Source of the DNA: Octopus sinensis
Lineage: Eukaryota
NCBI RefSeq assembly: GCF_006345805.1
Contig: NC_043005.1
Coordinates: 55,180,001 to 55,244,000, forward strand
Direction of reading: 5' to 3'
DNA length: 64,000 nucleotides
Below are positions 9,000 through 57,693 of the stretch, one piece after another. Under the pieces are notes generated by a model. The model was given only the letters and a program-made list of their open reading frames with translations, was not told the DNA's origin and ran no database searches. Made by a program: the position numbers and the translations under genes. Positions within the stretch are counted from its first letter, which is position 1, and the number at the start of each line of letters is the position of its first letter.

Positions 9000-9369
9000 G
9001 TGCAAGAGTGGCTTGCTTACCAACCACATACTTCCAGGTTCAGTCCCACTGCTTGGCATCTTGGGTGAGTGTCTTCTACTATAGCCTCAGGCCGACCAAA
9101 GCCTTGTGAGTGGATTTGGTAGATGGAAACTGAAAGAAGCCCGTCGTATATATGTGTGTGTTTATATATATATATATAATGTATGTGTGTATATGTTTGT
9201 GTGCCTGTGTTTGTCCCCCAACCATCGCTTGACAACCAATGCTGGTGTGTTTACGTCCTTGTAACATAGCGGTTCAGCAAAAGAGACCGTTCTGGGGTCA
9301 ATTTGCTTGATTAAAGGTGGTGCTCCAGCATGGGCCACAGTCAAATGACTGAAACAAGTAAAAGAGTAT
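9000..9369 (+). mobile_element. SINE family A
   Basis: ggttcagtcccactg...gccgaccaaagccttgtgagtggatttggtagatggaaactgaaagaagcccgtcg...gactgaaacaagtaaaagag. Confidence 0.9.
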
Positions 9370-12229: not shown

Positions 12230-12953
12230 CTGGCTGTGTGGTAAGATGCTGGCTTCTCAACAATGTGGTCTTTGGTTCAGTCCCACTGCACAGCACTTTG
12301 GACAAGTATCTTCCACCATAGCCCCAGGATGATCAAAGCCTTGTGAGTAGATTTGGTAGATAGAAACTGAAAGAAGCTCATTGTATATATATATATATAT
12401 AAATGTGTGCATGTCCTTGTGTTTGTGCTTCTCCCCAGCTACCACTTGACACCTGTTGTTGGTTTGTTTACATTCCTGTAACTTAGCAGTTTGGCCAAAC
12501 GAGACCAAAAGATTAAGTACTAGGCTTTAAAATAAGTTCTAGGGTTGATTTGTTTGACTAAAACCCTTCAAGGCAACACCTCCGCATGGCCGCAGTCCAA
12601 AGACTGAAACAAGTTAAAAGTAAGTAATATAGATGACCATGTAGTACGAAGTTTGCCTCCCAACCACGTGGTTCTGGGTTCAGTCCTACTGTGTGGCACC
12701 TTGAGCAAGTGTGTTCTATTACTGTCTCAGCTGACCAAAGCCTTGTGAGTGGATTTGGTTGACAGAATCTGAAAGAAACCCATCATATATGTCTGTGTTT
12801 GTGTCTTTGTGATTGTTTATCTCTCCATCACTTAGTGGTTCAGCAAAAGAGACTGATAGAATAAGTACTGGGTTGATTCATTTGACTAAAATTCTTCAAG
12901 GCAGTGCCCCAGTATGGCCACAGTCTAATGATTGAAACAAATAAAAGATATAA
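12230..12953 (+). mobile_element. Two family A SINEs head-to-tail (about 12230-12628 and 12635-12953)
   Basis: Both show the head, ccaaagccttgtgagt..gatttgg core and tgaaacaa tail. Confidence 0.85.
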
Positions 12954-14559: not shown

Positions 14560-15975
14560 AGAGTATCACATTGCCCCTCGTCATTGTTCTATGTGACTCT
14601 TTCATGAAATTTGGCTTCCTGAGATCAGCCATCACCATTTTGGCCTATGACTTTCTGAGTCTTCTTCTACCGGTTCCATGTTCTTTGAGCACTCAGAACA
14701 TCTTTACACATCTGATATACTCCAAATGTATCACACATCCATACCAGCACAGTCTTCTCTCTCTCTCTCTCTCACTTTTGTACATTGTAATTCCTTCCTC
14801 ATTGCCAGTTTTTTTCTTCTCTATTCCTTTCTACACGGTTGTTCATAAAAGCTCACATCACATATCTTGCAGGTCTTACTTCATTTCTTCCTATTTCTTT
14901 CTTGCTGTCTCAGTTTCCAACATTTCACGACTTAAATTTATGCTACTATACAGCATTGCAGTTCATCATCCAGTTACCCCTTAACTCTGAGAGAAATCCT
15001 TTGCTATCACCAGAGGTAATGATTCCTTGAACTCTTTCCACCCTGTTCTTACTCTAGCCCCTATGCCATTGATACACCCACCTCAAGAGCCATCTTAGCA
15101 GCATTATAGGCTCCTGGGCAAATCAGTGCACTGGGCCTTATAGTATTTATTTATCAACAGTAAGCCACAACATATATAGATCAAGATTGGGTCAAGACAG
15201 TACTGCCTGTCTCTTCTCTAAGCTTGATCGCCTAGATAACAAAAGTCATCAACCACTTCTCGTGAGCCTCCCTAGCATTTGAAGGACTTCATTTTATGTG
15301 TATTCATATTGCTAACTACACCTGTGCGTCTGCCATATATGATATCATTTTTTCCTCTGTTAGTCTACCTGTGATGTCATTACATCTCATCTGAGCCCAT
15401 GCTTTATACTGGGTACACCATATAGAATTTCTATCTGCTCCTTTCCTGCAGACAAAACACAACCATTTCCCTGTTTGATAACAGTCTTTTCTTTCTTCTG
15501 TCTGTTCAGTTTACTCTTGATTCTAGATTTTGCTTCCCTGCATGGAATTTCTTTGAGTCTTCTTCAGATCTGGCTACAAGAACTAAATCGCCAGCATATA
15601 GGTTCCCATGGACAACTGATCTTAAACTCCTATGTTGTAGCCTGGAGAACAATAATGAACTGGAACATGCTAAGGACTGAACACTGGCAAACCCCTAGCT
15701 ACATAGTGTGTTTATTGAACTCCTCCCTAGCTCTCACCTTGGAGATGGCACTCCTGTACATGGCTTGTATAGTTGTCACAAGCCATTTGTCTATCCCTAG
15801 TTTTCTTAGTGACCACCAGGCTGCACATTATGGAATCCTGTCAAACTCTTCTCCAGGCTGTTGAATGTGACCTATCGGGCTTTACCCCTTGATAAGTACT
15901 TCTGCATATAAATCCTTCTGGCATAAAACCGGACTGCATCTCATCTGGGGGGATTTATTTTGCTCCTAATCAATT
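14560..15975 (-). mobile_element. Decayed RTE-clade LINE: RT, Cys-rich insert, thumb and C-terminus
   Basis: Minus-strand translation with stops and frameshifts: DEMQSGFMP...WWSLRKLGIDKWLVTTIQAMYRSAISKVR...GVCQCSVLSMFQFIIVLQA...CPWE-LYAGDLVLVA (15587-15598)...GKWLCFVCRKGADRNSIWC...EVVDDFCYLGDQ...ARVRTGWKEFKE...RRLCWYG. Confidence 0.9.
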
Positions 15976-17248
15976 GTGCTACAAACTCTTTCACACATTG
16001 ACCTATCAATATTATTCTCAACCAACACACACGCATATGTATGAGCACCCACACACACACCTAACCACTTTTGTAATTATTTCGCTGGCTGTTATTTCTG
16101 CGGTATACCTCACTGCATTCATGTCCCCACAAGGCTGCACATTAAACCATCATGCAAACTTTTTCTCCTCTTCAGATATTACCGTTTAATCTATAATAAA
16201 GAGAGAGGCAGGGGAATAGAAAGCCTAACCTTGAACTAATCCAATTTGTACTAATCTAACCAAAACTAATTCTTCGCTCCTCTTCTCTTCCCAGTGAGTC
16301 GAGTCTGCGTGGTTTGTATACCAACCCGGACTTGTCAATCCTTGGAAATTCATCCATCCTAAATGTGTAGACTAAAATCTTATTAGTAACTAATACTTAA
16401 TACTTTGATCAATTTTACACAGACACACTCTTAATTCGATAAATATTTTCAAACTAGGTATTAGTAACACTCTACATAGGCTATTTATATAAATTGTATG
16501 CAATAAGTATTTTCCCAAAATTGATTTTTTACCCTTTACAGTGTTAATTTAAAGGGAGACAACTTATTGTTTACCAAATAAGTTTATAATTATATAATTC
16601 AAGCCCATCGCGAAACATCCTATCATCAACTAACAATAGTCAGTGTTGTTTGTTTATAGCTATAAACTTACTTGTCAGTCTCTATTATTTCTTTTAATTC
16701 TGACTATACTAATAATGACTATCAGCTGTTTTAATTTAACGTTTTTGAGAAAAAAAAAAAAAAAGAATTAACTTTTAATGAATCGGCTTTTAAGGAGGTT
16801 TCATAAAAATGAGTTTCTTTAGTAGACTGTCATGAGTTTGAGCTGTAAGCCTTCATATTGTCTCAAATATATTTTAAATCGTATCTCATATGATGTCAGG
16901 TAATGTATTTTTATTTATTTATTTATTTTTTGTTTTTTTTTTTGTTTTTTTTTTCCATATCATCAACAGCTTTTTTCTTTTTGTATTTCTCTCTGAATCA
17001 TTGATAACCTCCTGTTGATTATTCATCCCCTTCTACCACATCTATTTTTAGATGGTATTTCATTGTTATTCTACTGCATTCTTTATGCCTCTGTCTGTCA
17101 GCATGTCTGTATGTATCTAACATTTTATCTGCTTATTTATTTTCCTATCAATGTATCTGCCTATTCATCTTTCTATTTACCCATCTAACATGTCCATCTA
17201 TTTATTTGGTTATCTGTCTATTCATCTATTATCTATCTATTTATGTCT

Positions 17249-17404: not shown

Positions 17405-17614
17405 ATTTTACTCTTTTACTTGTTTCAGTCATTTGATTGTGGCCCTGCTGGAGCACCGCCTTTAGTTGAGCAAATTAACCCCAGGACTTATTCTTTGTAA
17501 GCCTGGTACTTATTCTATGTCTCTTTTGCTGAACCGCTAAGTTACGGGGACGTAAACACACCACCATCGGTTGTCAAGTGATGTTGGGGGTCAAACACAG
17601 ACACACAAACATAT

Positions 17615-17645
<31 letters not shown>

Positions 17646-17816
17646 CACACACACAATGGGCTTCTTTCAGTTTCCGTCTGCCAAATCCACTCACAAGGCT
17701 TTGGTCGGCCCGAGGCTATAGTAGAAGACACTTGCCCAAGGTGCCATACAGTGGGACTGAACCCACAACCATGTGGTTGGAAAGCAAGCTACTTACCACA
17801 CAGCCACTCCTGTGCC
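17405..17816 (-). mobile_element. SINE family A, well preserved
   Basis: Full tail-to-head reverse complement with CpGs retained. Confidence 0.92.
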
Positions 17817-22900: not shown

Positions 22901-25900
22901 TGAGATCACCAGGCACCCACAGAACAAGACCCCTCAACTTATATTACTGAGGGATAAGGAACTAAGACAGAGGGACAGGGGTGCCTTGCTGAAGAGGTGA
23001 ATATATGGACTGTCTGGAAAAAAGAAAGAGATATGTGAGACCAAGATGAATATGCAAGACAGAGTAGGGGACAGGAACAGTAGAAGTGGATGGATACATT
23101 AGTGATGATTTGAAATATTTCCTCACATTTAATTCAATGAGTAGGTGGTTCAGTTGATTGGGCAATTGAATACTTTTCATCAAAACTACAATCCATTTTA
23201 GTACTGTTACTCAAATTATTTAAGGTGAGTGAGCTTTGCAGAAACCATCCATCTCTGAAACCCTCTTCAATTTTACAGTGTTGCCTATGCCCATAGCAGC
23301 AAGTTATTCCTATCATATGATAGTTATTTACAGTTAGATGACCTGGGCTGTGTATGGGTTACATGGCTTGGACACAAAGCAACAAGACTTACTTGACCCT
23401 TCTACAAGTAATCTAATACCCTGTTCATTCAGCCACCTGTTCTCTTCTAGAGAAGATGTTGGACCGTAGAATACAATGATAGTGGTTGAAATTGATATGG
23501 TTTACCATGTTACTATACTGATTTCATAAACTGGCAGACCTTGGAGATAAATCATGTTAAACCAATCAGCATGGCAGTTATTACTGCAATATTCAGTATA
23601 ATCTCATTACTAAGTCTAATTTACTTAACAGCACAATCTAAAAGGAAATTGCGCAATGTAATAAGATTAAAGATTTTTTTTTAAAATTAGGATGTTCATT
23701 TCTTTACTATTGTATTTTCTGCTCCAGAAATAAAATTTCATTTGAGATAATTTTTCATTTAGCTTATTTTATTTAAGAGACAAATCTTCTCCAACAGTTG
23801 TTTTGTAAATCAAATATTCTCGAAAGAATAACATTGGTATATTGGTATCCATGTGAAATAATTAATTTCATGTATGCCACTTTTGCTATATCATCCTTTG
23901 GTTTAAAAATTTAATAAAATAACAGCACACATAGGTTTTGTGTCGGAGTTGTTCAGTCTCTCAGTAATATCCATTTTTAAAAAAGCAGTTTGTCCTTTGT
24001 AACTATCTGGTGGTATTCGCTACACAATGCTCAAAAACTGAAATCTATATTCTAAACTAAGTTCAGATTACATTTTCTGAGAACGTTAACTTGAAATAAT
24101 TAAGCATTATCACTTGTGTTAGTGATATATATTCAAATGCACTTCACTCTAAACATGAATATACATGTATGTATGTGTTGTTTTCTATGTGAAGCACTCA
24201 TGTTCAATTGGCCTTTCTGAATAGAAACAATTTCAGGATAGTTACATCTCAACTACCAACTACATCAGTTGCATGACATTGAATGAAGCATTCGGATTTG
24301 TGCAATAGATAAAATTGATTTGTCATTGATTTGGCCCAAATCAATAAGTAGTCTGTTGTCACAACATAATTGTAATATTTATTAGCCATAGATGTTGTGC
24401 TCGTTGGGAATGTAGTGTTCAGCAGTAAAAACTTATACCATTTAAGGATTTTCGTAATTAATGTTCATTATCAATAGCAGACAAAATTATTTATATATTA
24501 ATCATTAAACTTTTCTTTTGTCCTTTGCTTGAAAGGATTCCCTTGTACGTTTAGTTTTATTTGTTGAGCCTTTTATGTCTCTGAAGTTGATGAGCTGATC
24601 ATGCATGAGACATTGATGCAAACGAAGTGGGAATCTATATGGTTTTATAATTCCTGTATCTGTATAGGTTAGGAAAGAAGATAATCTTATGATAAGATGT
24701 CACTTTTTAAATTTCAGCAAGAGTTTGGTAATTTCACAAATAACGAACATTTATAATAAGATGAAGTTGTATGATTCTTTGGAATCTCTAAGTATGGTAA
24801 CGTATTTCTGTTGATCTTTTTATTGTCTAAACTGAGTAATAATCTGTATCTGTCTCGTTTATCACAAAACAGAAGATGCTTTTAGTATGAATTGGGTGTG
24901 TGAATGTGTGAGCACGAGAGCATGGACTCGTGTCTTTTTGCATGTTATTCCGTGCACGAGAGAAAAAAGGAAAAGAAATCGGTTATAAACTATTCAAATT
25001 AATAAAACTAATTATTAGCTTAACATCTATTTGAAATTTAACTATATGTTTCAGTCTTAAAGCTGTAGCTGTTATTAAATTTTATTTCTACTTTAGTTGG
25101 CCACATCTACTAAATAAAACAAAAAAACAACAAAAAATTTTAAATAACTCTAAAAACATTAAGCAAAGCTGCAAGAATTTCCTTTCATTCCATTTATATG
25201 TGCCACTGGCACATGGAATGTTTAAAAAAAAAGAAAAAAAAGGAAAAATCAGTCATGACAGCTACTTTATGACATTGCTCTATATTTCAGGCGATGCCAA
25301 GTATGCATTCCCTGCCAGCATGATAAAATTGCTATTTATTTATTTATTTATTATTTATTTATTTGTTTATTTATTTTTCTTATTATCTGACTGCTAAGTT
25401 TGTGAAACACAATTCTTGATAACTTTATCCTAATAAAAACAAGACATTCACATGAATGTCTTGTGTTGTTGTTTTTTTTTTTTTGTTTTTTTTTTGTATT
25501 CGTTCACTTGAGACGACGAGGCTGTGGGCGGAGGGAAAGATAATGCATAAATAATATCAGTCTTTTGTGCAGCCCTCTCGGTATGGCGGGGGGGGGGGAA
25601 CTGAGATTACATCTGGTGGTAGTGGCAGTGGGGATTATACAAAATAAGACACTGTTCATCTCTTAAAAAAAAAAAAAAAAAAAATCTGGTATCCTTCTCA
25701 TGCAGCGACATAATAATTTAGCTGTATGCTTACATGTGATGGATGAAATTCATGAAATAGCATGTCACTACAGACTTCCTTTCAATTTATCAACTCTGTC
25801 CTACATCACCCTTTAAAAAAAAAAGGACATCATTTCATCACGTTAGTGTCAAACCCTATTGCTACTGATTCAAAGAATGCACTTTCCTATCACACTAACA

Positions 25901-25953: not shown

Positions 25954-25985
<32 letters not shown>

Positions 25986-27205
25986 GAGGCAGCGAGCTGG
26001 CAGAATCATTAGCACACCAGGCGAAATGCTTAGTGGTATTTTGTCAATCTTTATGGTCTGAGTTCCAATTCCACCGAGGTCGACTTTGCCTTTCATCCTT
26101 TCACGATCGATGAAATAAGTACCAGTTTTGCACTTGGGTTGATATAATTGACTAGTCCCCTCCCCACAAATATTTTCAATGCCTTGTACCTAGAGTAGAA
26201 ATAATAATTATTATTATTACCATTATTAAGGTGGCGAGCTGTCGACTTTGCCTTTCATCCTTTTAGGAATCAATAAATTAAGTACCAGTTACACACTGGG
26301 GTTGATGTAATCGACTTAATCCTACCACCCAAATTTCAGGCCTTGTGTGTATAGTTGAAAGGACTACTACTATTAAGCCAATGAGCTGGTGGAATCATTA
26401 GCACATTGGGCAAAATTGCTTAGAGGCATCTCTTTTTATGTTCAGAGTTCAAATTCCACCGAAGTCAATTTTGCCTTTCATCCTTTTGGGGGTTGATGAA
26501 ATAAGTACCAGTTATGCACTGGGAGGTCAATGTAATCGACTAGCTCCCTCTCCAAAAGTTTCAGACCTTGCTTGTGCCTATAGTAGAATGGATTATTATC
26601 ATTGTTGTTGTTATTATTATTATTATTATTATTCCATTCAGGGCAACTTTGCCTTTCATCCTTTTGAGGTTGATAAAATAAGAACCAATTGAGTGCTGGA
26701 GTCAGTTTAATTATTTTATCCGCTCCCCTGCTTCTGTCAAAATTTGAAATTGTCATTATCATTATCATCATCATCATTGTTATTATTATTATTATTATTA
26801 AAGCAGTGAGCTGGCAGAATCGTTAGCACATTGTGTGAAATGCTTAGTAGCTCATCATCTGTTTTATGTTCTGAATCCGAAATTCCACCGAGGTCAATTT
26901 TGTCTTTTGTCCCTTTTTGGGTTGATAAAATAAGTACCAGTTGAGCACTGGGGTAAATCTAACCGACTTGCCCCATCCACCAAAATTGCTGACCTTGTGC
27001 CAAAATTTGAAATCATTATCATTATTATTATTATGTCTATTAAGGCAGTAAACTGGCAGATTTGTTAGCACTCTGGAAAACTGCTTAGCAGCATTCCCTC
27101 CATCTTGGCGTTCTGAGTTCAAATTCTTCATTTCGGAGTAGATGAAATAACTACTAGTTGAGCACAGGGGTCCCAAATTTCAGGCCTTGTGCCTATAGTA
27201 GAAAG
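25986..27205 (+). mobile_element. Head-to-tail array of six family C SINEs separated by (ATT)n-type tails
   Basis: Units start at about 25986, 26228, 26375, 26634, 26801 and 27042; shared ctttgcctttcatcc...aagtaccagtt core. Confidence 0.9.
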
Positions 27206-28060: not shown

Positions 28061-28890
28061 TCATCATCATCATTAATGTCCATGTTCCATGCTGAGTCTG
28101 ACTTAGGTTTGGAAAGCCACCAGCTGCATCAGGCTCCAGTCTGGTGTGGCAATGTTTCTACAGCTGAATGCCCTTCCTAATGCCAACCACTCCAAGAGTG
28201 TAGTGGGTACCTTTTCAGTACCACCAGCATAGGAGCCAGTCAAGTGGGCCTGGCATTGATCACGTTCAGATATGTGCAACCACCATGGGAGCCAGTCTGG
28301 GGGCACTGGAATCAGCCATGTTCAGATGGTGCTTTCTACATGCCACTGGCATGGTAGCCAGCCAGGCAGCCCCGGCATCGATCATGTTCAGATAGTGCTT
28401 TTTACGTCCCACCAGCACAGGAGCCAGTTAGGATGCACTTGCATCAGTCACATTCAGATGTTAATTTTTACGTGCCACCAGCATGGGAGCCAGTCAGGCA
28501 GAAATAGCATCGACTGGCTAGTTCCATGTCACCGGTGCTTTTTATGTGCCACTGGAACGGGAACCAGTCAGGGGGCACTGGCCACAGCTACAGTTTGGGT
28601 TTTACTTGACTCAACAGGTCTTCTCAATCACAACATATCTCCAAAGGTCTCAGTTTCCTGTCATTGCCTCTTTGAGGCTCAGTGTTTGAAGATCATGCTT
28701 CACCACCTCATCCCATGTCTTCCTGGGTCTACCTCTTCCACAGGTTCCTGCCACAGTTAGGGTGTGGCACTTCCTCACACAGCTATCCTCATCTGTGCAT
28801 AACACATGACCATATCAGCATAATCATCTCTCTTGCACACCACATTTGATGCATCTTATGTCCATCTTTTCTCTCAGGGCACTCACACTG
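28061..28890 (-). mobile_element. RTE LINE 3' end (ORF C-terminus, 3'UTR with 66-bp tandem repeats, (GAT)n tail)
   Basis: Minus translation YGHVLCTDEDSCVRKCHTLTVAGTCGRGRPRKTWDEVVKHDLQTLSLKEAM; catcatcat tail at 28061. Confidence 0.9.
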
Positions 28891-33860: not shown

Positions 33861-35721
33861 TTCCACCTGTACTTGTGAGGTAGCCATGCAGCTCATAAAA
33901 CCGAGATCTCTTTCAATTCAAATAGGATATAGTAGAGAGGAAGCAGCTTTACACTAGGAGATGAAAGGTAGCGGTATCAGAAAAGGGGCCAGAGCAGAAC
34001 AGATTTTGTGCTGTAGAGGAGCCACATGGTTACTTACATTTTGGAGGAGAGGGTGGGACGACAAAGGGTGGCACTGCAAAAGGATTTTTTTTAAATAACA
34101 TAACAACGGCATCTCATCCAGTCTAATCCTTCTTTTCCAATCAATTTTGCTATTACTCTTTCTGTAATTTTCATATCCTAGTCCAGTTTACCGATGCCTC
34201 TATAGTTTTCTTTTGTGTCAGTTTATGATGCTGTTGCTATGCTAGCCATTGGTCATCATACCTTCCTCTATTACTGTCTGTTTTTACTTTCATTTCTAGT
34301 TAGTTTCTATGTTTTTTAGCCTGGAAGCCACCTACTTTTGACAAAGTAAATACCTTCCATGTCTTGTTGCATTAATAATGAAGAATTACCCAAATGTCTT
34401 CTTTTCAACAATACTAGCCTAACCATTTCATTATTCTGTTTCTAACTAAAATACTGCTCTTACATGTTTCAGATGAATTTTAAAATAATCATGAATTTAT
34501 CCTGGTTTCATAAAGCAACTACAACCTTTTTATTTATTGATATATTAATGTGGTTTTCGGAACGCAACAAATGGTTATTAAATAAATCTATTACGTAGTT
34601 TTTGTCGCAAAGCAAATCTAATAGGTAAATATGGGTAAATTGAGTAAAATGTAAATGTATTTAAATTTTGCTTAAACATCACCATATAAAATAAGTTATT
34701 AGCTAATATTCAATTGGGTATACAGCGAAATTGTAATATAGGAGAATTGTGCACATTATTGGATTTTCAATTGAACTTAAGTGCATATAAAATAGGCATG
34801 CCACAAAGGTAAAATAAAAATGAAATATCGGAATTTATGTCTAAAGAAAACTACAAAACGAAATAAATACACAGAAACATAGTGATTCACTAATATAATT
34901 TATCAAAATTTGTCACCCACCTTACTGGCAAATTAAAACTACAAGACAATAAATAAGAACAAAGTAAATTTTAAAAAAGCATTTTATAAAATCAAATTAT
35001 ACATATACAAATATACACTTGAATGGTATTCCTCTTGTGGAAAGTTATAAAGTATCTCACTTCACAAAATGAACATTGAAAAGTCATTTAGGTTGACTAT
35101 CTACTGGGAGCTTTCTTTTTCCGAGATATAGTTTTTCACAATTATTACTCTGACAGCTTTTTGCCTTCTTTCTAACAGTTTTGTTTCTTTTCTTTGCTTT
35201 TCTTTCTTTTTCTTTTTTTTAAATTTTTTTATTTGATGGATAGCTTACCCTTACACTCAACTGCATTGTTACATCTAAACTCTACACAGAACTGCAGTTG
35301 CTTGCATCTGTTTCGAAGCACCCCTAATTTGGGTTATTGTAGGAAAGCATTCAAAATACCAATATTTACTATTTATCGAACTAAGTATTGCCATTATTTT
35401 TTACCCAGTCTACTAACCATGTAATGCTTTTTTGATTCATTCAGTTAATGCCACCTATGCAACTTTTGTAATCAGACTCCATGGACAATGTGCCATTTTT
35501 ATCCACATATTGGAAAATAAAATGGCTTTGTATTGTATGAGGTCACTGAACAGTTTCCTTTCTGTTTACATTGTGGTTAACAAAAATTTGGTTTATAGGT
35601 ATGATTGGGATTTTAACATTTAGGGTTAGAATTTTAGAGTTTAAATTACATGGTGGGGAAAATTATTTGAAAAATAATTAAATTTGTAAATTGTACTCAC
35701 ATGCATAATTCCAGTCTTAGA

Positions 35722-36063
35722 TCTTTGTTTCAGTCATTAGACTGCAGCTCTGCTGGGGCACTTCCTTGAAGAATTTTAGTCAAATGAATTGATCCCTGTA
35801 CATTTTTTTTCTTTAGCTAAACCATTAAGTTACAGGGATGTAAACACACCAACACCGCTTGTCAAGTGGTGGTGGAAGACAACCACTCGCACAAATACAC
35901 ACAGATATGTATATAAATATGATGGGCTTCTTTCAGTTTCTATCGACCAAATCTCCTCACAAGGTATTGGTTGGCCCGAGACTATAGTAGAAGGCACTTG
36001 CCCAGAATCTGGAACCATGATTCATGAGAAGCATACTTCTTACCACACAGCCACCCTGTGCCC
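35722..36063 (-). mobile_element. SINE family A
   Basis: Reverse complement of the family A tail, core and head. Confidence 0.8.
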
Positions 36064-36082
36064 ATATATATATATATTAAGT

Positions 36083-36132
36083 GCACGATTTATTCGTGAT
36101 CAGAGTTGTTTGAAAACTGAGGTACTACTGTA
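36083..36132 (-). mobile_element. Tigger/pogo-like TIR remnant with TA target site
   Basis: Minus strand TA-CAGTAGTACCTCAGTTTTCAAAC; no partner TIR found. Confidence 0.45.
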
Positions 36133-36166
36133 TGTATGTATGTATATATATATATATATATGTATG

Positions 36167-36251
<85 letters not shown>

Positions 36252-36306
36252 GTATGTATATATATATATATATGTATGTATATATATATATATGTATGTA
36301 TATATA

Positions 36307-36344
<38 letters not shown>
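36131..36344. repeat. (AT)n/(ATGT)n microsatellite
   Basis: Direct reading. Confidence 0.97.
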
Positions 36345-36346
<2 letters not shown>

Positions 36347-36567
36347 CAATAAAGGGTTTAGCAACGAATTGCCTTACCACATACCGAATTTAGAAATAGC
36401 AGTCAAAGAGTTATAGCTATTTCTTCTACTAAAAAGGGAGATCTCAGTAAAAACAGCAATTGGAAGGCAGACACAAACAGGTAAGAGAGAATGAATTGAC
36501 GGCAATCTATCATACATTTTTAAGTTATCTACGGACGTACGTTTCGAAATCAAGTTTTTAGGAAAGC
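36345..36567 (-). mobile_element. Left arm of a perfect 223-bp inverted repeat; young element fragment, possibly a Penelope-like terminal repeat
   Basis: Exact reverse complement of 36906-37128; CpG-rich; abuts (AT)n. Confidence 0.6.
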
Positions 36568-36606
36568 TTTTATTGGTTTTAGGAAAGAAAGCTTTTAGGA
36601 AAGTTT

Positions 36607-36900
36607 TTATTGGTTTCAAATTTTGGCCTATGGCTAGGAATTGGGGGGAGGGGGGGACAAGTCGATTGCATCAACTTTAGTACTGGTGCTTATTTTATCA
36701 ACCCCAAAAGAATGAAAGGCAAAGAATTTGAACTCAAAGCATAAGGACAGATAAAATACCAGGAAGTATTTTGCCCAGCATGCATTAGCATGATTCTCCA
36801 GCTCACTACCTCATACCTTTTTTTTTACATATTGAACACATCCATTTCTCTAATGTTGAAAGGATCCATTCTTCTCTCCTGTTTTAATCTTTGATAAATT
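36607..36900 (+). repeat. 294-bp copy of 37935-38228 (family C SINE plus RTE flank)
   Basis: One substitution seen (cctatggct vs cctaaggct). Confidence 0.95.
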
Positions 36901-36905
36901 CTTAT

Positions 36906-37234
36906 GCTTTCCTAAAAACTTGATTTCGAAACGTACGTCCGTAGATAACTTAAAAATGTATGATAGATTGCCGTCAATTCATTCTCTCTTACCTGTTTGT
37001 GTCTGCCTTCCAATTGCTGTTTTTACTGAGATCTCCCTTTTTAGTAGAAGAAATAGCTATAACTCTTTGACTGCTATTTCTAAATTCGGTATGTGGTAAG
37101 GCAATTCGTTGCTAAACCCTTTATTGCTTAGTATTACTTAAATTTTCCTCGAATGAGGCTTTTACATGCCGAAGACTACTTGGTGTAATTGATAATTATT
37201 CCAAATTAATTAATTTCACCCTTCATTATTACGG
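36906..37234 (+). mobile_element. Right arm of the inverted repeat plus about 106 bp extension ending in (AT)n
   Basis: 36906-37128 pairs with the left arm; continues to ...cttcattattacgg then (AT)n. Confidence 0.6.
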
Positions 37235-37272
<38 letters not shown>

Positions 37273-37739
37273 ACATAGACATATACATACATATATTCAT
37301 ATATGCACACACACACAGAGGCACAAGTTAAGAAGTTCACTTTGCAACGATATGGTTTTAGATTCAGTCTCACTCTGGGGCATCTTGTGCTCATGTTTGC
37401 TTTGAGCTCATAAATGTCTTTTGAATGAAATTGGTAGGTGGAAACTTCAGAAGTTTTTTTTTGTTTGTTTGTTTGTTTGTTTTTTTGTTTTTGTTTTTTT
37501 GTTTTTTGATAATCAGCTTTGGCTTGTGAAACATATTTATATCTGTTTAAGAATTCTTCAGTAAATCTGTATTTTGGATTTCACTCAGTTTGATAATTCC
37601 AATATGTCTGATACTTCTTGCATTGAGTTGATTATTTGGATTAATTGCTGCCAGTCACCTGATTGTTAGTCTACACACACACATACACACACACACACAC
37701 CCACATATAGTGTGTTTGTGTGTGTGTCTATGTCTTTAT

Positions 37740-39260
37740 TTAGGTCCTATCACTTAACTGTAAGAAAAGCTACCAATTACTTCAAAGGAACCTTTTGTGG
37801 GTATTTCAAAGAAATTATTATCTGCTACTTAAGAATTCTATCTTCTCCATTAGTCTCCATGTGATCCCACTACATCTTGTTCATCCCTATTTTGCATTAA
37901 AATTTGTAGAATTTATATCTATACCTTTTTTTACTTATTGGTTTCAAATTTTGGCCTAAGGCTAGGAATTGGGGGGAGGGGGGGACAAGTCGATTGCATC
38001 AACTTTAGTACTGGTGCTTATTTTATCAACCCCAAAAGAATGAAAGGCAAAGAATTTGAACTCAAAGCATAAGGACAGATAAAATACCAGGAAGTATTTT
38101 GCCCAGCATGCATTAGCATGATTCTCCAGCTCACTACCTCATACCTTTTTTTTTACATATTGAACACATCCATTTCTCTAATGTTGAAAGGATCCATTCT
38201 TCTCTCCTGTTTTAATCTTTGATAAATTTACTTTGATTCTAGACTCTGCCTCCTTGTCTGGAATTTCTTCTCTTAACCTGCTACATGCTCAGTTATAAGG
38301 ACTGACTCATGGGCAAGCAGGGGTTCATATGGACCACCAGCTTTAAGCTCTTCTGTTATGGCTTGGAGCTCTACCACAAAAAGGCAGGTACAGATGACTA
38401 AGCTTTGATGGACTCCAACCTACACAATAAATTTATCTCAGCTTTCTGACTGCACCTCTATATATGGCTTGAATGGCTCTCACAAATCATTTGTCTACCC
38501 TTAGTTTTCTTACTGATCACCAGATTATAGAACATGGAACCCATTTAAAGCAAATGCATACTTTCTCCAGCTTTTACAGTTTTATTTGTAGTTCTTCTGC
38601 CACCATGTTACAGTCTGTGTTATTGAAACCCTGACCCAGTTACAGATCTGGTCTATGGCCCTCAACAGCTTATTCCATAAAACCTCTGTTCTAAGTTTCC
38701 ATCTCCAACTTCTTTTTTGTTAAATCTTTCATCTGGTACTTCTCTGAACTTCTAGCAGCTCTATGGCTCCATTTTTGTTTTCTCTCCAAACCAGCTGTCT
38801 TACATCTCTGATTTTATTTAGCCCTAATTCTGAAGTCACTAATTGCTAGTTTCTGTTCAGCAGGGAAAGATTTAGTATTCACAACCATCTGTTTAGCCTG
38901 TTTCTAGTTAGAATGAAGTCTTTCTGGCTTGTATGTTTGCTTGATTTCCAAGTGATTTGGTGGCTGGCTGCTTGGTTTGCTGAAGTTCATGTTGCGATTG
39001 TTTAGGTCACTTATATTGCAGGTCTCCAGAAACCTTGATTCCTCTTGGCTTTTCTTACCATATCTTTGATCTCCATTTACACCACAGCAGTCCTCAAGCT
39101 GTTATCCAACATATTCAATAAGGTCACCACCTGCAATAATGAAGGTGGAAGGGCTTCATAAATGCAGTCCTTCTGTTCATCTGCTAGCCCTGGCTGTGAT
39201 ACTTAGGCAGAAATAAATATTGCAGCCTATTGTCAATAATTAACCTAAGCTTACTTATTT
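37740..39260 (-). mobile_element. Decayed RTE LINE (APE endonuclease, RT, Cys-rich insert) interrupted by a family C SINE
   Basis: Minus translation: ISA*VSQPGLADEQKD...IIAGGDL...YGKKSQEESRFLETC (EN); LEK...VPCSIIW*SVRKLRVDK*FVRAIQAIY...VGVHQ...LQAITEEL (RT); KWMCSIC...RCSGIT.RLMEK. Confidence 0.85.
37935..38130 (-). mobile_element. SINE family C with about 20-bp TSD
   Basis: Flanks atacc(t)nacttattg (37921-37940) and atacc(t)nacatattg (38131-38152); tail gccaaaatttgaaaccaataa on the minus strand. Confidence 0.85.
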
Positions 39261-40262
39261 AATCACTCACTCTAACAACTTAAATTCTCTAATTATCACA
39301 TTTCTCTGCTAACTGTATACCTACTCCACCTACTTCCTTTGATATTACCTACCTAGAATTTTTTTTTTTTTTTTTTACCGTTCTTTGCCTACGATGAGTT
39401 TGACTGAAGGTCACCTTCCATCTTATTTCATGCACACATCTACTTGCCTCTGCTTTTGCATCTCTGCAATATTTTCTGAGACCTTTCATCATACCATTGA
39501 TGACAGCAGCAGCTCTGAAGTTTATCACCTCACAAAACGATGCAGGATTTCTGCAGGTGGCTAATTATTTGACTTTTGCATCTGAAAAGAATAAGAAAGC
39601 CAGTGCAATCATTTGCTGACAACCAGAACACCCTCCCACATGACTAGATGTTTCCTTTTTGATTGGTTTGCTATATTTCACCCATTCACTAACAATTTCT
39701 AGCATGCAATTATCATTATTATTATTATTGTTACTACTATTATTAACGTTGGGGTTGTTAGTCTAAGTCACATGATATGTTATATGTTAAGTGTTAGCAG
39801 TACAAGACCCCCAAAAAACAAAAATGCTGGTTACTAAGGGAATACATCATAATAGACATTCCAGAAATTTGCGGTGGGAAGTGGGTGCTCTGAGGATGAA
39901 CAATACATACTTTAGATTTTAGGCTATCACTATAAGACAGCAAGAAATGAAAACGATACAAACATTAATGATAAAACTAATGGATAGCAACATATATATA
40001 TATATATTACTAAATTGCTACATGACAAAGCAAACAAATACGATTAGCTTAACTTTCCATGGATGGAGCAACTTGCAAAGTCACGTGACATATACAGAGA
40101 AGGAAAGGAGACAGACAAATAGAGAGAAGGTGAGAGGGAGAGAGGACAAACAGCATACACTTTTGGTTTTAGGCTATCACTTTTAAGACAATGCGTATGA
40201 GATGTATTTTTCTTCAGTGTGCTTTGTATATGTGCATGTGTGTGTATATATACATATATTTA

Positions 40263-41542: not shown

Positions 41543-42030
41543 AAGGCAGCAAGTTGGCAGAACTATTAGCACACCTGACAAAATGCTTAATGCCATTTTG
41601 TCTGTCCTTACATTCTGAGCTCAAATTTCACTGAGATCAACTTAGCTTTTCATCCTCTTGGATTTGATAAACTAAGTACCAGCTGATCACTGGCATCAAT
41701 GAAATTGACTTATCCCCACCCCAGAATTTCAGGTCTTGTGCCTGTGGTTGGAAGGATTATTATTATTACTACTACTACTAAGGCAGCAAGCTAGCAGAAT
41801 TGTTAGCACGCTGGACAAAATGCTTAGCACTTTTGTCTGTCACTACATTCTGAGTTCAAATTCCGCCAAGGTCAGCTTTATCTTTTATTCTGTCAGGGTC
41901 AATAAATTAAATACCAATTGAGTACTGGGAGTCAATGTAATCAACTATCCCCCTCCCCAAAATTTCAGGCCTTGTGCCTATAGTAGAAAAGATTACTATT
42001 ATTGTTACTACTACTACTACTGCTGCTACT
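41543..42030 (+). mobile_element. Two family C SINEs head-to-tail with (ATT)/(ACT) tails
   Basis: Units at 41543 and about 41779. Confidence 0.85.
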
Positions 42031-44083: not shown

Positions 44084-45814
44084 GAAAAGGAAGTAGTAAA
44101 GTTCAAATTTCAAATTCCTTCCAAGATGCAGAAAATTTGTCCTTTATTTTTGTTGTCAGTATCATGTTGGTGTCTCAATTCCACTGAGACGCCATATCAA
44201 TTGCAGTTAATGGAAATTTTCATTCAGTGTTGAAATTTCATGAATATTACAAAATGTATTTGTTGAAAATTAGTGAAATCTCATCAGGACATCATAACAC
44301 CTATTATGAATCTATAATATGATTTTTTAAAATCAGAACCATCATGAACTATATATGCCATAGTTAAAGGCCTAAGCTACAGATTGAAATGATCAAAACA
44401 TTAACCGTTATTTATTGAAGCTCTCTTGTGAAGATGAGCAAAAATATTGCATCTTAAATGGACAGACTATATAAAAATTTGAGAGGTGATATCTGGAAAT
44501 CTTTCCTTCTGGGTTGCTGGTGATGATGATGGTGGTGGAGGTGGTGTGATAAAATAAGTATCCAATCGCTCAGATTTAGGCCTTATGATTATATAAGAAA
44601 CCAGTGTTAGGAAACTGAACTGAAGAATTATGGACTTTCTTTTTGTCTCCCATTCGTTTTAACATTCAGTATACGTTACATCGTTTGTTTATACATTTTT
44701 CATTTATGTGTGTGTGTGTGTGTGTGTGCATGCACACATGACGGACTTATTTCACCCATAAAGACTTCATTGGCTCAGGGCTAAAATAGAAGAGATTCAT
44801 TGTCCAAGGTGCCGCACTGTGAGACTAAGCCTGAAACCATGTGGTTTTGGAGGCAAACTTCTTCAATCGCCTATATGTGTAGCCTTAAGGTTTTTGAATT
44901 TCTACAGATGAAAGGAATGGGTTAAAATCATGGTCTAGGTAGAAGAAACATTTCCCATTTTGTGTTCCAGTCTCCTTTATATAGCTTGCGTTTGCTGAAT
45001 TTCTATAACTATCTGATAAAGTTGTTTACTTAATATCACAATGTACGCATATTATTTGAAGTCATTACTGTGACATGGAGTGAGGTGTAACTGCTGTTGA
45101 TGATGATGATGCTAATTACTCGATATAGCATTTTTCTGTTAGTTTTGTGCTTTATATTGAATGCAAATGTTTGCCAGTTTTTCTGTGGTTTATTTATTTT
45201 GCCTTGTTTCGTTGTTTGATGCTGGCTTTTATTTTGGTTGTGTGTGGTTTCGGTGTATTGTGTTTGAGGTTGTCTCTGGTTTTTATCAGATTAGCTATTT
45301 CTAGTGTTTAATTGGGGATTGTATTTTTTTTTTATATTTCCTTGTGTGGTACTTTTTCCTTTTTGTTTTGATGTGCCTATAATTATTTTGTCGAATGTAT
45401 GTACTACAGAATGGCTACAAATTGGCTGAGCTACTGGAGTGTTGGATAGAATGCCTTGCAGTGTTTGTTCCTGCTCTCTATGCCCTGAGTTCATATCACA
45501 CTGAGGTCAGTTGTGTCTTTCAGCCTTCCAGGCCTGATTAAACCATTAGTCATATATACGTACCAATACCCCCACTTTCTGTGTTGCATTGGGAGAAGGG
45601 TCAGTGAGATGGTGACTCCTTAGAAGGGTCTTGCAAGAGGCTAGCAACCTTTTCTCAGAGAAAAACTGATATAGTATTGGAAATGTCCAATGACAGACTG
45701 ATATGGAGTACAGCATAGAACAGAAATAGCGATGCGGTGTCTATGCTGGTAATAATGTTGTTTGCGAACCTTTGAAAACCTTGATTCCATTTCATGGCAG
45801 AACTCCTTCCGTTA

Positions 45815-48413: not shown

Positions 48414-50659
48414 GTCTTTGAAATTTCCCTTTTTTTAACTTTATTCACATTAATTCTAATGGTTTGTGTGAGAATGAGATAGAGAGACCCCTAATTTCTT
48501 CATTCTGTGACAAACACTTGAATCTGAGTGAGGTTATATTTCTCTGATACTGTTAAGCTTTGTCTGTCTTATCTTGTGAATTCCTTTATCTTTGTTTGCC
48601 CATGCTTATCATTGGAACCAAAGAAACACTTTACTCTTTTATTTTCATCAGAAATTCATTCAGTGACTCATTTTGTTCTTTCTGATCAGTTCTTTTACTT
48701 ATGCCATGCTACTTGACAGTATAATCCTCCTGGCATGCACATACATCCATATTCTCTCGGGTTCTGTATAAAGACAAAATAGTTTTCTGTTATCACTTTA
48801 ATCAAACATGCATTACACTATGTAATGAACTTTTTTTCTTTGTCTTTTGTCAGTAAGTGTTATTTCCTGTTTGTTTTTATCTAGAAATCAGAGGAAGTGA
48901 CTACTATTTCCTTCAAACTTAGCTTTTGTGACTTGGACATCAATGTTTTCAAACTGACCTGTTTTCCATTACACTTCAGACTGATTCGGTGCTGAGTTGC
49001 TGAAGCTGAAATATTGTTATAGCAAATATTCTGCTCAATATTACGCATTTGTTTGTCAGTTGCTTGACCTTAACCACTTGAGCATGTCCCTTAGAGGCTG
49101 ACAGTACATGCATCTCTGATCATGAGCAGGAGTAGTTGGGGAGCATCATAGCTATGTGTTGAGAGAGGGATTCTTTGGGGTTTGAATAAATGTAACAAAA
49201 GCAAAATTTGAAGGAAATACTAGCCACTTTTCATACTTTCTAGGGATAAGCAAATAAGAAATAACAGTTGCTACACAAGGACCAAAATCGTGTTACATAG
49301 TGTTATATGCTAAGTATTACCTTATAGTGAATTTGTCAGGTATAAAACACTGCAACCAATTGTCAAATGCTGATTGAAATCATTTCACTCCAAATACCTA
49401 GAAAATGTTATGAAAACATCATAACTTCTTGTTTCCATTTTTTTTTTGTTTTTTTTTTTTGTATTTTTGTCTCTCTACCATATTGGGGTTTTATGTCAAA
49501 ATAATGAATTTGAATCCTGGTTATTTTCATATTTAATTGATTAAGACTTTCTCTTATTCTTTTGCAGCATCCTCTCTTTCTCTCCCCTACACTTCTCTCT
49601 GTATGTCTGTGTGTGTATATATATATATGTATTTTATTTTGCTGACTTTCTTTTGTCTGTTCCAGGTGACCTACTACCTCAGTAATGGCTGATTCCTGGA
49701 GGAGTTGTCAGAACATTCTCAGTGGCGACATCACATGAGCACTGATTAGCAGCTGTTGATTAGTGCCCATAGGCAGGTTTTTATTATTGCCGTCACTAAT
49801 GGACTTTTAAGCATCTTGTTAATCAGGTTATTCTTTGCCATTGATGTGCAATGTTTATATATTTGTTCTTATTTTTTTTTTATGTGTATTTTAATTTATT
49901 AACTTATTTTTTATTGTCCCCCCACCCCCATTTCTCTCTGAATTAATTATACCCATGATGGGTTTCATATCAAACAAAGAAAAATTATTAAATAGTATTT
50001 CAGTGAGTTAATTTGCTATTTGTGTGGGTCAAAATGATGAAATCTAAATAATAAATGACAATAAAATTGTCGTTTATCCCAACACACACTGGCTGATCCA
50101 TATACGTAAATAAATAATTGAAACACTTCTGTAGAAACATTAGATCTTGAGCTAATAGGAGATGGCCGACACAGTAGAGCGCCGGACTAAATGCCTCACA
50201 GCATTTAGTTTCGTCCCTCTCCTTTCCATGTTTACAACACATCAAGTCAACTTGGCCTTTCGTGCTAGCTAGCGAAGGCTGATGAAGTGAGTACTGGTGT
50301 TATAATAGGCTCGATTATACTGTACTTCTTCCCCCCCCCCCACCATCCCCAACAAAAAAATGATGGCTCTGTGCCTAATCAAAGGAAATCAATATTCAGC
50401 CAAAATTTTCAATATCAACTAATATTGAGTTTTTCCCCCCACCCCCCACCCCACCCCTCTATTTCCTATCATTCTGACATCTCACTCACACAGTGATGAT
50501 ACAACCTATCTCTTGTCTGTTAACATACAGTATGTGTTTATTTACATACGTGTGTGTGTTATATATTTATATATATATATATATATATATATGTACGTGT
50601 TTGTGTGTGTATATATATATATATAGACATATACACATACATCTGTATGTACATATATA

Positions 50660-50857: not shown

Positions 50858-51560
50858 ATTTTCTGGTACTCTTGGTTCCACCCACACCAATGCCAGATTA
50901 TCTGCACATAATAATACTTCTGGTTAAATTACTAGCAGAATTGAGATGACTGCTGCCACTTTGTTTAATAATTTTTTCACTGCTAAACTTTCTTGATACA
51001 CCTTTGTTTCTGCATTAGAAACTTCTTATAAAGTTGGAAACATTCACTCTAGATTTCAACCATAATAATATGAAAGTGCAAATATTTAAAAACTAAATCC
51101 ACTAATTGTCAATACCAAATCTAATGACCATACCTGGCCCTCTCTTGAAGTGTAACGATGAAAGGCATATATTTACCTTTTTTCTTTCTCACACTGGGAC
51201 ACTGTGAAGGTATGTTATCTTCTAACTTGCTCTTCACTGAGAGAGCATCCGGTGTTGTGTGTGGTATCAGTTTTGAGATTTAGATATTCGCATCTTTATA
51301 TTATTGTAAATAGGTGTAGGGAAAGTGTTTCCACCTTCGTGATAATGTTACAAGTGAATGAACAACAGTCTATCGTGGAAGCTTGGTAATGAAAGAATTG
51401 CTAATAATGGGCACTATAAATTTAAGTGTCTTCACGTAATTATGTCCAGATTAAAGGAGGTACCACATCGTTTATTGCCAAAACATTGCTACAGTACATG
51501 CGTTTAAATATATAAATATATATATATACATACACACACACATATATATATACATATATT

Positions 51561-52475
51561 ATGTGTGTGTGTGTGTGTGTATGTGTAAGTATGCACATGT
51601 AATATATATGTATGCATTTATATATGCTTGTGCGTTTTTGCATGCATATAAATGTATATATTATATATATATATGTATATATAATGTATATATGAATATA
51701 TATATATATGTATATATATATGTGTGTATATATGAATATATATATATATATATATAATATGTATATGTTAATGCTCTTTATTAGCGTTTGCACTATATAA
51801 AATGTATATAATAATGTGTGTGTGTATATATGTACATCCATATAAACTGTATACACACACACACATACATAATTATATATATTTATATATACACAGAGTG
51901 AGAGAGATCCACGGGCATCAGTGTATGCCTAAGAATTTCTCTTAGCATCTTTTGGTATTGGATTCAATCTGACTATGTGGCATGCCTCTATGTTGCACCT
52001 TGAGCAAGTGTCCTCTGCTTTTGCCCAAGGCTGACCAAAGCCTTGAAAGTGAACTTGGTGGATGGAAGATGCAAAAAGGCGTGAAAGCAAACATGCAGCA
52101 TTTTCTTTGTCCAGGGTTCGTTTGAAGGCGTTTGGTCAGTCTAGGGCTATTGAAGAACGTGTGTGGTTGTGCATGCACACACACAAATGTAAGTGAATGT
52201 TGATATTTTATGTTTTCACTACTTGAAAGAATGGTGATGATACAGACAATTGTTGTTGATATTATGATTGGTTGCTCTTGGCATTAGACGATCTCTGAAG
52301 TAAAAGGATACCTTAATTAAAGAAGCAGGTAATAGTTGATAATGGGAATAGCATCAAGGTGTAAGGTCCTGCCTCAACAACCCCATCCAATTTTTGCAGG
52401 CTTGGAAAAATGGACATTAAATGAACAAATGGACGTCTATAATATATACAAATACATGTATATAAATATATACAA

Positions 52476-52519
<44 letters not shown>

Positions 52520-52656
52520 GTACATATATATATATGAATATATACAGACATTACACATAAAGACATACACATACTTACATATGTAAACAAGCACATATAT
52601 GTGTGTGTGTGTCTTTATACTCTCACACACACACACACATACATAATTATATATAT

Positions 52657-52702
<46 letters not shown>

Positions 52703-53591
52703 AGTATGCACATGTAATATATATGTATGCATTTATATATGCTTGTGCGTTTTTGCATGCATATAAATGTATATATTATATATATATATGTATATATAAT
52801 GTATATATGAATATATATATATATATATATATATGTGTGTATATATGAATATATATATATATATATATATATAATATGTATATGTTAATGCTCTTTATTA
52901 GCGTTTGCACTATATAAAATGTATATAATAATGTGTGTGTGTATATATGTACATCCATATAAACTGTATACACACACACATACATAATTATATATATTTA
53001 TATATACACAGAGTGAGAGAGATCCACGGGCATCAGTGTATGCCTAAGAATTTCTCTTAGCAATCTTTTGGTATTGGATTCAATCTGACTATGTGGCATG
53101 CCTCTATGTTGCACCTTGAGCAAGTGTCCTCTGCTTTTGCCCAAGGCTGACCAAAGCCTTGAAAGTGAACTTGGTGGATGGAAGATGCAAAAAGGCGTGA
53201 AAGCAAACATGCAGCATTTTCTTTGTCCAGGGTTCGTTTGAAGGCGTTTGGTCAGTCTAGGGCTATTGAAGAACGTGTGTGGTTGTGCATGCACACACAC
53301 AAATGTAAGTGAATGTTGATATTTTATGTTTTCACTACTTGAAAGAATGGTGATGATACAGACAATTGTTGTTGATATTATGATTGGTTGCTCTTGGCAT
53401 TAGACGATCTCTGAAGTAAAAGGATACCTTAATTAAAGAAGCAGGTAATAGTTGATAATGGGAATAGCATCAAGGTGTAAGGTCCTGCCTCAACAACCCC
53501 ATCCAATTTTTGCAGGCTTGGAAAAATGGACATTAAATGAACAAATGGACGTCTATAATATATACAAATACATGTATATAAATATATACAA

Positions 53592-53643
<52 letters not shown>

Positions 53644-53762
53644 GTACATATATATATGAATATATACAGACATTACACATAAAGACATACACATACTTAC
53701 ATATGTAAACAAGCACATATATGTGTGTGTGTGTCTTTATACTCTCACACACACACACACAT
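51561..53762 (+). repeat. About 1.12-kb near-perfect tandem duplication (about 51561-52640 and 52670-53762)
   Basis: Offsets 1115-1122 bp; differences seen only in microsatellite lengths and one 1-bp indel. Confidence 0.93.
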
Positions 53763-53899
53763 ATTTCATAGAACAGAATAGTGACAAAAGTGACTCAAAG
53801 AACTTGTATGAAATTCCTGATCTTTGAGACATTTTCGAAGCATTTCTGCACCCCTAACTCTAAGAATATACACATACTGTAGTATTGTTGTTATATTTC

Positions 53900-57301: not shown

Positions 57302-57693
57302 GCACAGGTGTGATTCTGTGTTAAGAAACTTGCTTCTCAACCACACAGTTCTGGGTTCAGTTCCACTGTGTGCCTCCTTGAGCAAGTATCTTCCACTGTA
57401 GCCTTGGGCCAACTGAAGCCTTGTGAGTAGATTTAGTAGACGGAAACTGAAAGAAGCCCATTATATATATATATATATAAAAAACTATGTTTATGTGTCT
57501 TTGTAAGTGTTCGCCACCACTGCTTAACAACCAGTGTCCATTTGTTTACATCCCCGTAACTTAACGGTTCGGCAAAAAGAAGACTAATAGAATAAGTACC
57601 AGGCTTAATATAGGGTCTGTTCAACCAACTAACAGTTCGTCAAGGGAGTGCCCTAGCATGACTACAGTCTAAATACTGGAACAGATAAGAGAT
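57302..57693 (+). mobile_element. SINE family A
   Basis: ctgggttcagttccactg...gccttgtgagtagatttagtagacggaaactgaaagaagccc... Confidence 0.85.

Follow-up and report, generated by a model that had tools for sequence, protein, structure and literature searches.

A young 890-bp inverted-repeat block in an octopus intron, with a bridge copied from nearby DNA and features of a double-ended insertion into a (TA)n microsatellite

Penelope-like elements (PLEs) prefer (TA)n targets, have unreadable target-site duplications (TSDs), commonly carry an adjacent inverted 5′-truncated copy and may bear a tail of 30–40 bp at one end only (PMC8557442). A PLE protein cleaves and extends both strands in vitro, with reverse transcription starting at two internal sites (PMC11167929). 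In twin priming by the long interspersed nuclear element (LINE) LINE-1, a single RNA supplies the inverted and the direct segment from adjoining stretches that overlap, or stand apart, by no more than 10 bp (PMC11702581). DNA polymerase theta (Pol theta) performs abortive microhomology-primed synthesis and templated extension both in cis and in trans (PMC4912351); templated insertions by Pol theta and synthesis-dependent microhomology-mediated end joining (SD-MMEJ) are also treated, at least in part, in PMC2943611 and PMC5728401. Here we compare with these systems an 890-bp block (36345–37234) from Octopus sinensis, in which two head-to-head copies of one sequence enclose a copy of neighbouring DNA. 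The block lies in a 64,000-nt stretch of contig NC_043005.1 (assembly GCF_006345805.1, positions 55,180,001–55,244,000, forward strand), hereafter the window, whose numbering is used throughout. An earlier note drawn from the letters alone, here called the original prediction, took the block for a very young composite insertion.

The left arm (36345–36567, minus orientation) is the perfect reverse complement of the right arm (36906–37128, direct orientation), a match of 223 nt at 100% identity with 338 nt between the copies, recovered by a repeat search and by script. A chance origin of such a repeat is impossible, and self-comparison of the window returned only one other inverted match of at least 60 bp at ≥85% identity, between copies of a short interspersed nuclear element (SINE) 8 kb apart. 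The arms stand head to head, their outer ends facing microsatellite. The left arm adjoins a 215-bp (TA/TATG)n array (36131–36345), which it meets with 0–1 nt of microhomology; the left flank (36126–36344) is imperfect (TA/TATG)n whose last 31 nt (36314–36344) are pure (TA)n, and is the presumed target or fragile site. On the right, the sequence runs exactly 106 nt further (the extension, 37129–37234, plus strand) and ends directly at an (AT)10(GT)10 tract (37235–37270), giving a right copy of 329 nt and a left copy of 223 nt. Both arms stop internally at the identical nucleotide of the shared sequence (...AGGAAAGC), the left arm ending ...TTTTTAGGAAAGC and the right arm opening GCTTTCCTAAAAA.... 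The spacer holds more than a local copy: reading along the plus strand, a 39-nt filler (f1, 36568–36606) precedes the captured copy (B′, 36607–36900), and a 5-nt filler, CTTAT (f2, 36901–36905), follows it. B′ duplicates 37935–38228 (B) over 294 nt with a single mismatch (36631 T versus 37959 A; repeat search and script).

No TSD is readable, since TA repeats lie on both flanks; the sole candidate is a trivial TA/.../TA, given a unit cut at 36346–37128. The original prediction had described the exact inverted repeat, the near-identical internal duplicate, the outward arms reaching (AT)n (on the right after extra bases), the missing clean TSD and the composite build, and each of these descriptions holds. 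It had also called the block very young, and so it is: the arms differ at 0 of 223 positions and the duplicate at 1 of 294, which amounts to one difference in 517 compared positions, although a date in years would need an assumed rate.

The direction of copying can be read from the surroundings of B. Its first ~205 nt belong to a SINE family with many copies in the window that are 65–75% identical and carry (AAT)n tails, diverged members of which lie at 25985–27018 and 41544–41989. The SINE in B (~37932–38160, plus strand) sits within an older interspersed repeat that flanks it on both sides. This repeat occurs twice in the window (37821–38436 and 15329–15715, ~62–64% identity), the first copy being split by the SINE and the second uninterrupted: 37821–37928 aligns to 15329–15444 and 38163–38436 to 15456–15715, with the alignment continuous across 38228/38229, the right end of the captured segment. 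Because the SINE in B interrupts a repeat that is continuous elsewhere, and because that repeat crosses the right end of B, the direction runs from B to B′. Judged by this sequence context, the downstream copy is the donor in its native setting and 36607–36900 is a partial duplicate, comprising the SINE body and 66 nt of the older repeat. At the mismatched position B has the SINE-family base and B′ a derived base, so the change arose on B′. The bridge had been predicted to be locally captured sequence, which this context supports while adding its direction. The accompanying idea of gene-fragment capture does not survive, as the captured material is intronic repeat DNA with no gene fragment in it.

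The captured segment begins (37935) within ~10 nt of the 5′ end of the donor SINE. A Pol III transcript of the SINE was considered as the template of B′; it would fit a start near the SINE 5′ end, but the T9 run at 38151–38159 should have terminated it before 38228, and we rejected it. At 25985–27018 and 41544–41989 the same SINE family forms tandem arrays, with (AAT)n tails between units and 65–75% identity among them.

The two fillers are informative about how the junctions were made. Filler f1 is a stutter of snippets from the arm end and the copy start: TTTTAGGAAAG(C), from the inner end of the arm, occurs three times including in the arm itself, and TTTTATTGGTTT, from the start of the copy, occurs twice, with the snippets linked through TTTT and AAAG microhomologies. 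It restarts exactly at the arm-terminal ...AAAGC three times. All 36 of the 36 nt tested (36568–36603) can be tiled by 6-mers or longer words taken from 30 nt on either side, which none of 20,000 shuffles achieved. When f2 is read on into the opening 5 nt of the right arm (CTTAT+GCTTT), the 10 nt match, in reverse complement, AAAGCATAAG of the donor (38064–38073); in the 3 kb searched, ~0.003 occurrences of any one 10-mer would be expected. It reads as 5 nt of templated synthesis primed on the 5-nt microhomology AAAGC. Viewed on the minus strand, it reads as if an end ...AGGAAAGC-3′ had paired through AAAGC, been extended by ATAAG and then been released. The tiling, the repeated AAAGC restarts and the 10-mer match together suggest that the inner ends of both arms behave as free 3′ ends of one sequence (...AGGAAAGC-3′).

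Filler taken from adjoining sequence and microhomology at the switches, the signature of templated-insertion end joining, are both present at the junctions. This chemistry does not identify the enzyme, however, as Pol theta and template jumping by a reverse transcriptase leave the same marks. End-to-end template jumping is known for non-LTR (long terminal repeat) reverse transcriptases. A rolling-circle or microDNA origin of B′, raised by the occurrence of CTTAT also at 37934–37938, was set aside: f1 lacks the expected circle junction, and the 10-mer at 38064–38073 explains f2 better.

CpG content separates the arm sequence from its surroundings. The observed-to-expected ratio (o/e) is 1.06 in the right arm plus extension (36906–37234, 10 CpG) against 0.28 in the whole window, 0.27 in the left flank (35000–36125), 0.06 between arm and donor (37271–37934), 0.10 in the donor (37935–38228) and 0.07 downstream (38229–39500). 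Only 0.7% of 329-nt windows reach 1.06, and the Poisson P value is 4e-4 at the window rate and 2e-5 at the local rate. By this measure the arm sequence looks like a recent arrival. The 106-nt extension by itself holds 3 CpG (o/e 1.26) where 0.5–0.7 are expected (P = 0.01–0.03), the last of them 2 nt from the microsatellite. As the extension shares the CpG excess of the arm, the two belong together, apart from the old flank, and this counts against an element whose terminus is the inverted repeat.

Deleting 36345–37234 joins 36344 to 37235 and yields an (TA)n(TG)n tract, in which (AT)10(GT)10 continues the left (TA)n in phase. The CpG excess and this in-phase empty site therefore favour recent insertion of the whole 890 bp, and what we see looks like the insertion into an AT microsatellite that had been proposed. 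We regard the CpG and microsatellite evidence as a moderate likelihood ratio, ~3–5 to 1, and not as proof. The window contains ~20 CpG-rich 200-nt patches, about half of which are recognisable SINE copies, including a pair of 100%-identical SINEs.

Seven CpG-rich 200-nt patches (o/e 0.87–1.55; 5076–5325, 16251–16450, 24776–25100, 25401–25675, 34551–34750, 44551–44750 and 51276–51525) have no other copy in the window and could be young low-copy insertions or unmethylated regulatory patches. Microsatellite density is extreme, with 48 pure (TA)≥8 tracts in 64 kb, and many long open reading frames (ORFs) in the window are spurious products of TA/TG repeats.

Our preferred explanation, to which we assign a probability of roughly 0.45, is that the block arose in place in a single recent event, a double-ended insertion in which one short, CpG-undepleted template entered (TA)n and the gap was bridged when synthesis switched templates to the donor locus. 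Such an event would begin with cleavage of the (TA)n target on both strands, each 3′-OH then priming the copying of the same short template. That template would most likely be RNA from a retroelement with recent activity. One of the primers would start at its 3′ end and the other 106 nt further in, and both products would reach the template 5′ end, leaving two inward-facing 3′ ends of the same sequence (...AGGAAAGC-3′) that could not pair with each other. The polymerase would make abortive microhomology-primed starts (AAAGC followed by ATAAG, and the stutter in f1), copy nearby nucleic acid at the donor locus 0.7–1.0 kb downstream, whether DNA or nascent intron RNA, and finally jump onto the very 3′ end of the opposite product to close the gap. 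The by-product would be a perfect 223-bp hairpin in a transcribed intron. PLEs behave in this way, priming on both strands of (TA)n targets and leaving head-to-head copies with a tail on one side; a captured DNA fragment and a repair polymerase may do the same job as a retroelement. LINEs are abundant in the genome of Octopus bimaculoides, where R2/R4/NeSL account for 3.1% and RTE for 4.6% (PMC10925132).

A more specific version seems to us distinctly unlikely, namely that in this cephalopod the block has frozen an intermediate stage of PLE-like or R2/R4-like retrotransposition primed on both strands, in which cDNAs unable to pair were joined by a reverse transcriptase jump onto nearby host nucleic acid. 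If true, this version would give such elements a route to capture host sequence and to create a long perfect double-stranded RNA (dsRNA) hairpin in the same step, here in a neural transcription-factor gene of an animal whose ADAR editing is very active. Were the succession of arm, local copy and inverted arm to turn up at other loci, capture would be a recurrent process, one so far missing from descriptions of these elements.

Several observations weigh against a double-ended retroelement insertion. The common inner end needs a template with a defined 5′ end, which is here assumed. The arm occurs only twice in 64 kb, and sensitive blastn found no diverged copy in the window or in 21.5 kb of Argonauta hians; a 64-kb sample rules out no family smaller than roughly 40,000 copies. 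The ends of a dispersed element had been predicted in divergent orientation; the orientation stands, and the dispersed family was not found in these sequences. HMMER returned 0 matches for the arm ORF among 1.8 billion predicted-protein representatives, one 24-mer of the arm had no exact match in metagenome, prokaryote or viral collections, and blastn of the arm plus extension against plasmids gave 0 matches. A reverse transcriptase (RT) or GIY-YIG ORF continuing from the arm, which the original prediction had asked about, has left no coding remnant at the locus: six-frame translation of 34600–39500 contains no Pfam domain, and no ORF of at least 90 aa lies between 36416 and 50493. No Rfam family reaches its gathering score in the window, no hammerhead appears at E≤5 in 35500–39000 and no tRNA signal was found. 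The absence of a readable TSD counts on the same side, as does the absence of a 3′ motif common to other (TA)n-adjacent sequences in the window. The tail is 106 nt where PLEs have 30–40 nt, and Naiad PLEs persist only as old remnants in cephalopods (PMC8557442). Some half of the window's CpG-rich patches cannot be recognised as repeats, and the arm could likewise be an unmethylated resident; with pure (TA)≥8 tracts every 1.3 kb, a position between two of them proves little.

Should the arm prove to be resident DNA, replication template switching is the main rival; local fold-back repair of such DNA we judge rather unlikely. Here 36906–37234 would be old, locally unmethylated sequence, in which a break or stalled fork at the (TA)n edge created an end at 36906. 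The adjacent 223 nt would then have been copied in inverted orientation, either through an intermediate of hairpin or palindrome form or by switching from one template to the other, leading and lagging, with the centre being filled from B by Pol theta-type end joining or by microhomology-mediated break-induced replication or fork stalling and template switching (MMBIR/FoSTeS). An arm that is unique in all searchable sequence suits this account, and identical inner ends are what a hairpin or palindrome centre would give. The filler is what templated extension, in cis as well as in trans, classically leaves behind (PMC4912351), and inverted copies and new RNA hairpins are documented to arise when templates are switched at forks (PMC10766183, PMC5453318, 10.1101/2021.04.15.439925). 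Dense AT-rich microsatellites and other young local duplications in the window agree with it as well. Yet it requires a 329-bp patch with CpG o/e of 1.06 to survive in an intron whose flanks stand at 0.06–0.27, it needs a 294-nt insert ~10 times the typical Pol theta filler, and it makes the clean in-phase (TA)n(TG)n empty site a coincidence.

An assembly or library artefact would confine the problem to the left 561 bp (inverted arm, fillers and B′), derived from a chimeric or in-vitro template-switched molecule at a microsatellite that is hard to sequence. Perfect arms and a near-perfect copy are equally expected of such a molecule, the block abuts the 215-bp (TA)n array, and very young duplications occur twice elsewhere in the window (358 bp matching at 100%, and a ~1.1-kb tandem at 98%); tandem or inverted structures of the PLE type are, moreover, troublesome for assemblies (PMC8557442). 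Exact-protein look-ups for four window ORFs (36374–36619 minus, 36920–37099 plus, 28272–28760 plus and 35789–36346 plus), aimed at independent copies of the junctions, retrieved no record. The structure nevertheless regains the correct left flank after three junctions, unlike fold-back reads, and B′ has a private substitution. The window contains no N and many long microsatellites and is probably based on long reads, so that the whole block would fit within single reads; the Illumina-based O. bimaculoides assembly GCA_001194135.2 consists of 713,915 contigs (PMC10700109), and a HiFi assembly exists too (PMC10925132). We hold an artefact to be very unlikely.

Less likely again is the capture of DNA that is not from a retroelement (mitochondrial, viral or extrachromosomal DNA, or a free cDNA) at a (TA)n break, with fold-back copying of one end and local filler. 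The CpG-undepleted, T-rich character of 36906–37234, junctions that resemble end joining and the lack of retroelement hallmarks would all fit such a capture. Against it, stops interrupt every frame under the mitochondrial code (code 5), which rejects a mitochondrial protein-gene origin and does not cover rRNA or the control region; no rRNA or tRNA signal is present, and the viral, metagenome, prokaryote and plasmid comparisons described above gave no match.

P, Ac/Ds and Mu elements typically show filler DNA at internal deletion junctions, left by abortive gap repair. Least likely of all is a DNA transposon or foldback element, Pack-type or like a miniature inverted-repeat transposable element (MITE), with 222-bp terminal inverted repeats (TIRs) and an interior replaced by local sequence in gap repair: it would account for the filler and for the Tc1/mariner or Stowaway-like signature TA/GCAAT...ATTGC/TA of a unit cut at 36346–37128, but of the two TAs the left is trivial, lying inside (TA)n, and the right would be there by chance 1 time in 16, the CpG excess of the 106 nt outside the right repeat (P = 0.01–0.03) shows the young unit outrunning its supposed terminus, replacement of the interior exactly at both repeat boundaries is unlikely, and neither a transposase remnant nor another copy was found.

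The ORF at 89–1345 (plus strand) forms the final coding exon of a gene for an Ikaros-like C2H2 zinc-finger protein, with 417 of 418 residues matching an NCBI protein of O. bimaculoides (GCA_001194135.2). A Logan contig from octopus metatranscriptome SRR3401912 (PMC11662614) is 99% identical to 263–1378 and then jumps to 49666–49739; GT stands at 1379–1380, and a polypyrimidine tract precedes AG at 49664–49665. Positions 1379–49665 are therefore a 48.3-kb GT–AG intron on the plus strand that follows the stop codon (1343–1345), that is, an intron of the 3′ untranslated region, and the block within it would be part of the plus-strand pre-mRNA. In Argonauta hians (L001), identity is ~90% in the coding exon and the non-coding DNA does not align; that locus ends 25 kb short of the block.

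The predicted RNA fold of 36345–37128 has an energy of −468.6 kcal/mol against −173 ± 9.6 for shuffled sequence (z = −30.7). Because the block is intronic, on the sense strand and predicted to form a perfect stem, a dsRNA stem from the transcribed block, as originally proposed, is a reasonable and plausible expectation. Matches to the microRNA families mir-297, mir-466 and mir-1277 scored 28–60 bits against gathering thresholds of 81–90 and are artefacts of TA/TG microsatellite. Octopus bimaculoides is noted for extensive adenosine-to-inosine editing. The locus would thus offer a one-step origin for a 223-bp perfect hairpin in a transcribed octopus intron and a natural test substrate for ADAR or small-RNA pathways. 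If real, it also keeps every junction of a complex event almost unmutated, a degree of detail rarely readable in old insertions, and bears on how head-to-head retroelement insertions or fold-back repair events are resolved.

The window holds other young repeats. At 7715–8413, two 100% identical, tRNA-like, CpG-rich SINE units stand in head-to-tail order; an identical 22-nt (TA)n tract precedes each of them and a third (TA)n follows the second. Either one tandem insertion or a very recent duplication mediated by microsatellite produced the pair. A ~1.1-kb tandem duplication (51543–53763, 98% identity) is rich in TA/TG microsatellite and includes two internal 300-nt stretches at 100%. A second SINE family, ending ...CTTACCACACAGCCAC..., is represented at 9007–9368, 17409–17793, 35810–36060, 57392–57650, 12312–12632 and 2115–2404, often followed by (TA)n, and one of its copies sits immediately upstream of the left microsatellite of the block.

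How does the block compare with known systems? Host-derived sequence between long inverted repeats recalls Pack-type elements and Pack-MULEs (Mutator-like elements). The block differs from them in having no 9–11-bp TSD, no known TIR family and no transposase relative, in a young unit that outruns its repeat, and in an insert made of a SINE and an old repeat from 1 kb away. The Pack-type capture first suggested for it thus fails on TSD, unit boundary and the nature of the insert.

Replication-based template switching, including origin-dependent inverted-repeat amplification (ODIRA) and FoSTeS/MMBIR, produces perfect inverted adjacent copies in one step, along with new RNA hairpins (PMC10766183; PMC5453318; 10.1101/2021.04.15.439925; 10.1101/2023.04.19.537475). 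It copies resident DNA, however, whereas the sequence copied in the block looks newly arrived by its CpG content, and the scale is different: 223 nt here, tens of nucleotides in template-switch mutations and kilobases to megabases in ODIRA. With Pol theta and SD-MMEJ the block shares short filler copies of end-adjacent sequence, repeated abortive starts and microhomologies of 1–5 nt (PMC4912351), although typical inserts there are a few to tens of nucleotides and the main insert here is 294 nt from ~1 kb away.

Twin priming of LINE-1 and chimeric LINE insertions resemble the block in opposite-strand second priming, microhomology junctions and templated insertions (PMC11702581; PMC13174262). 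The block has the same 223 nt twice, with no poly(A) and no 12–18-bp TSD; twin priming, to which the original prediction likened the block, is contradicted in its strict sense by this full 223-nt overlap, as against one of at most 10 bp.

As for PLEs, no RT or GIY-YIG ORF, pseudo-LTR or hammerhead occurs at the locus and no family in the searched sequence, although Naiad-type PLEs also lack the hammerhead (PMC8557442), so that its absence does not exclude every PLE; Naiads are, for their part, reported as long inactive in cephalopods. The PLE literature does not call for two copies that end at one and the same nucleotide, as those of the block do, and we have not seen a 294-nt bridge of nearby host sequence described for these elements. 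Every ingredient invoked here is known already, and a single locus defines no new class. The shared features are a (TA)n target with an unreadable TSD, a weak likeness given a (TA)≥8 tract every 1.3 kb, and head-to-head copies with 3′ ends outward and an inverted truncated copy adjacent. Extra terminal sequence on one side only recalls the PLE tail, at 106 nt against 30–40. The reported double-strand cleavage and extension, combined with two starts of reverse transcription, would give the layout of the block (PMC8557442, PMC11167929). PLE membership is not established; in the manner of its insertion, by analogy with these elements, the block appears to work like a PLE.

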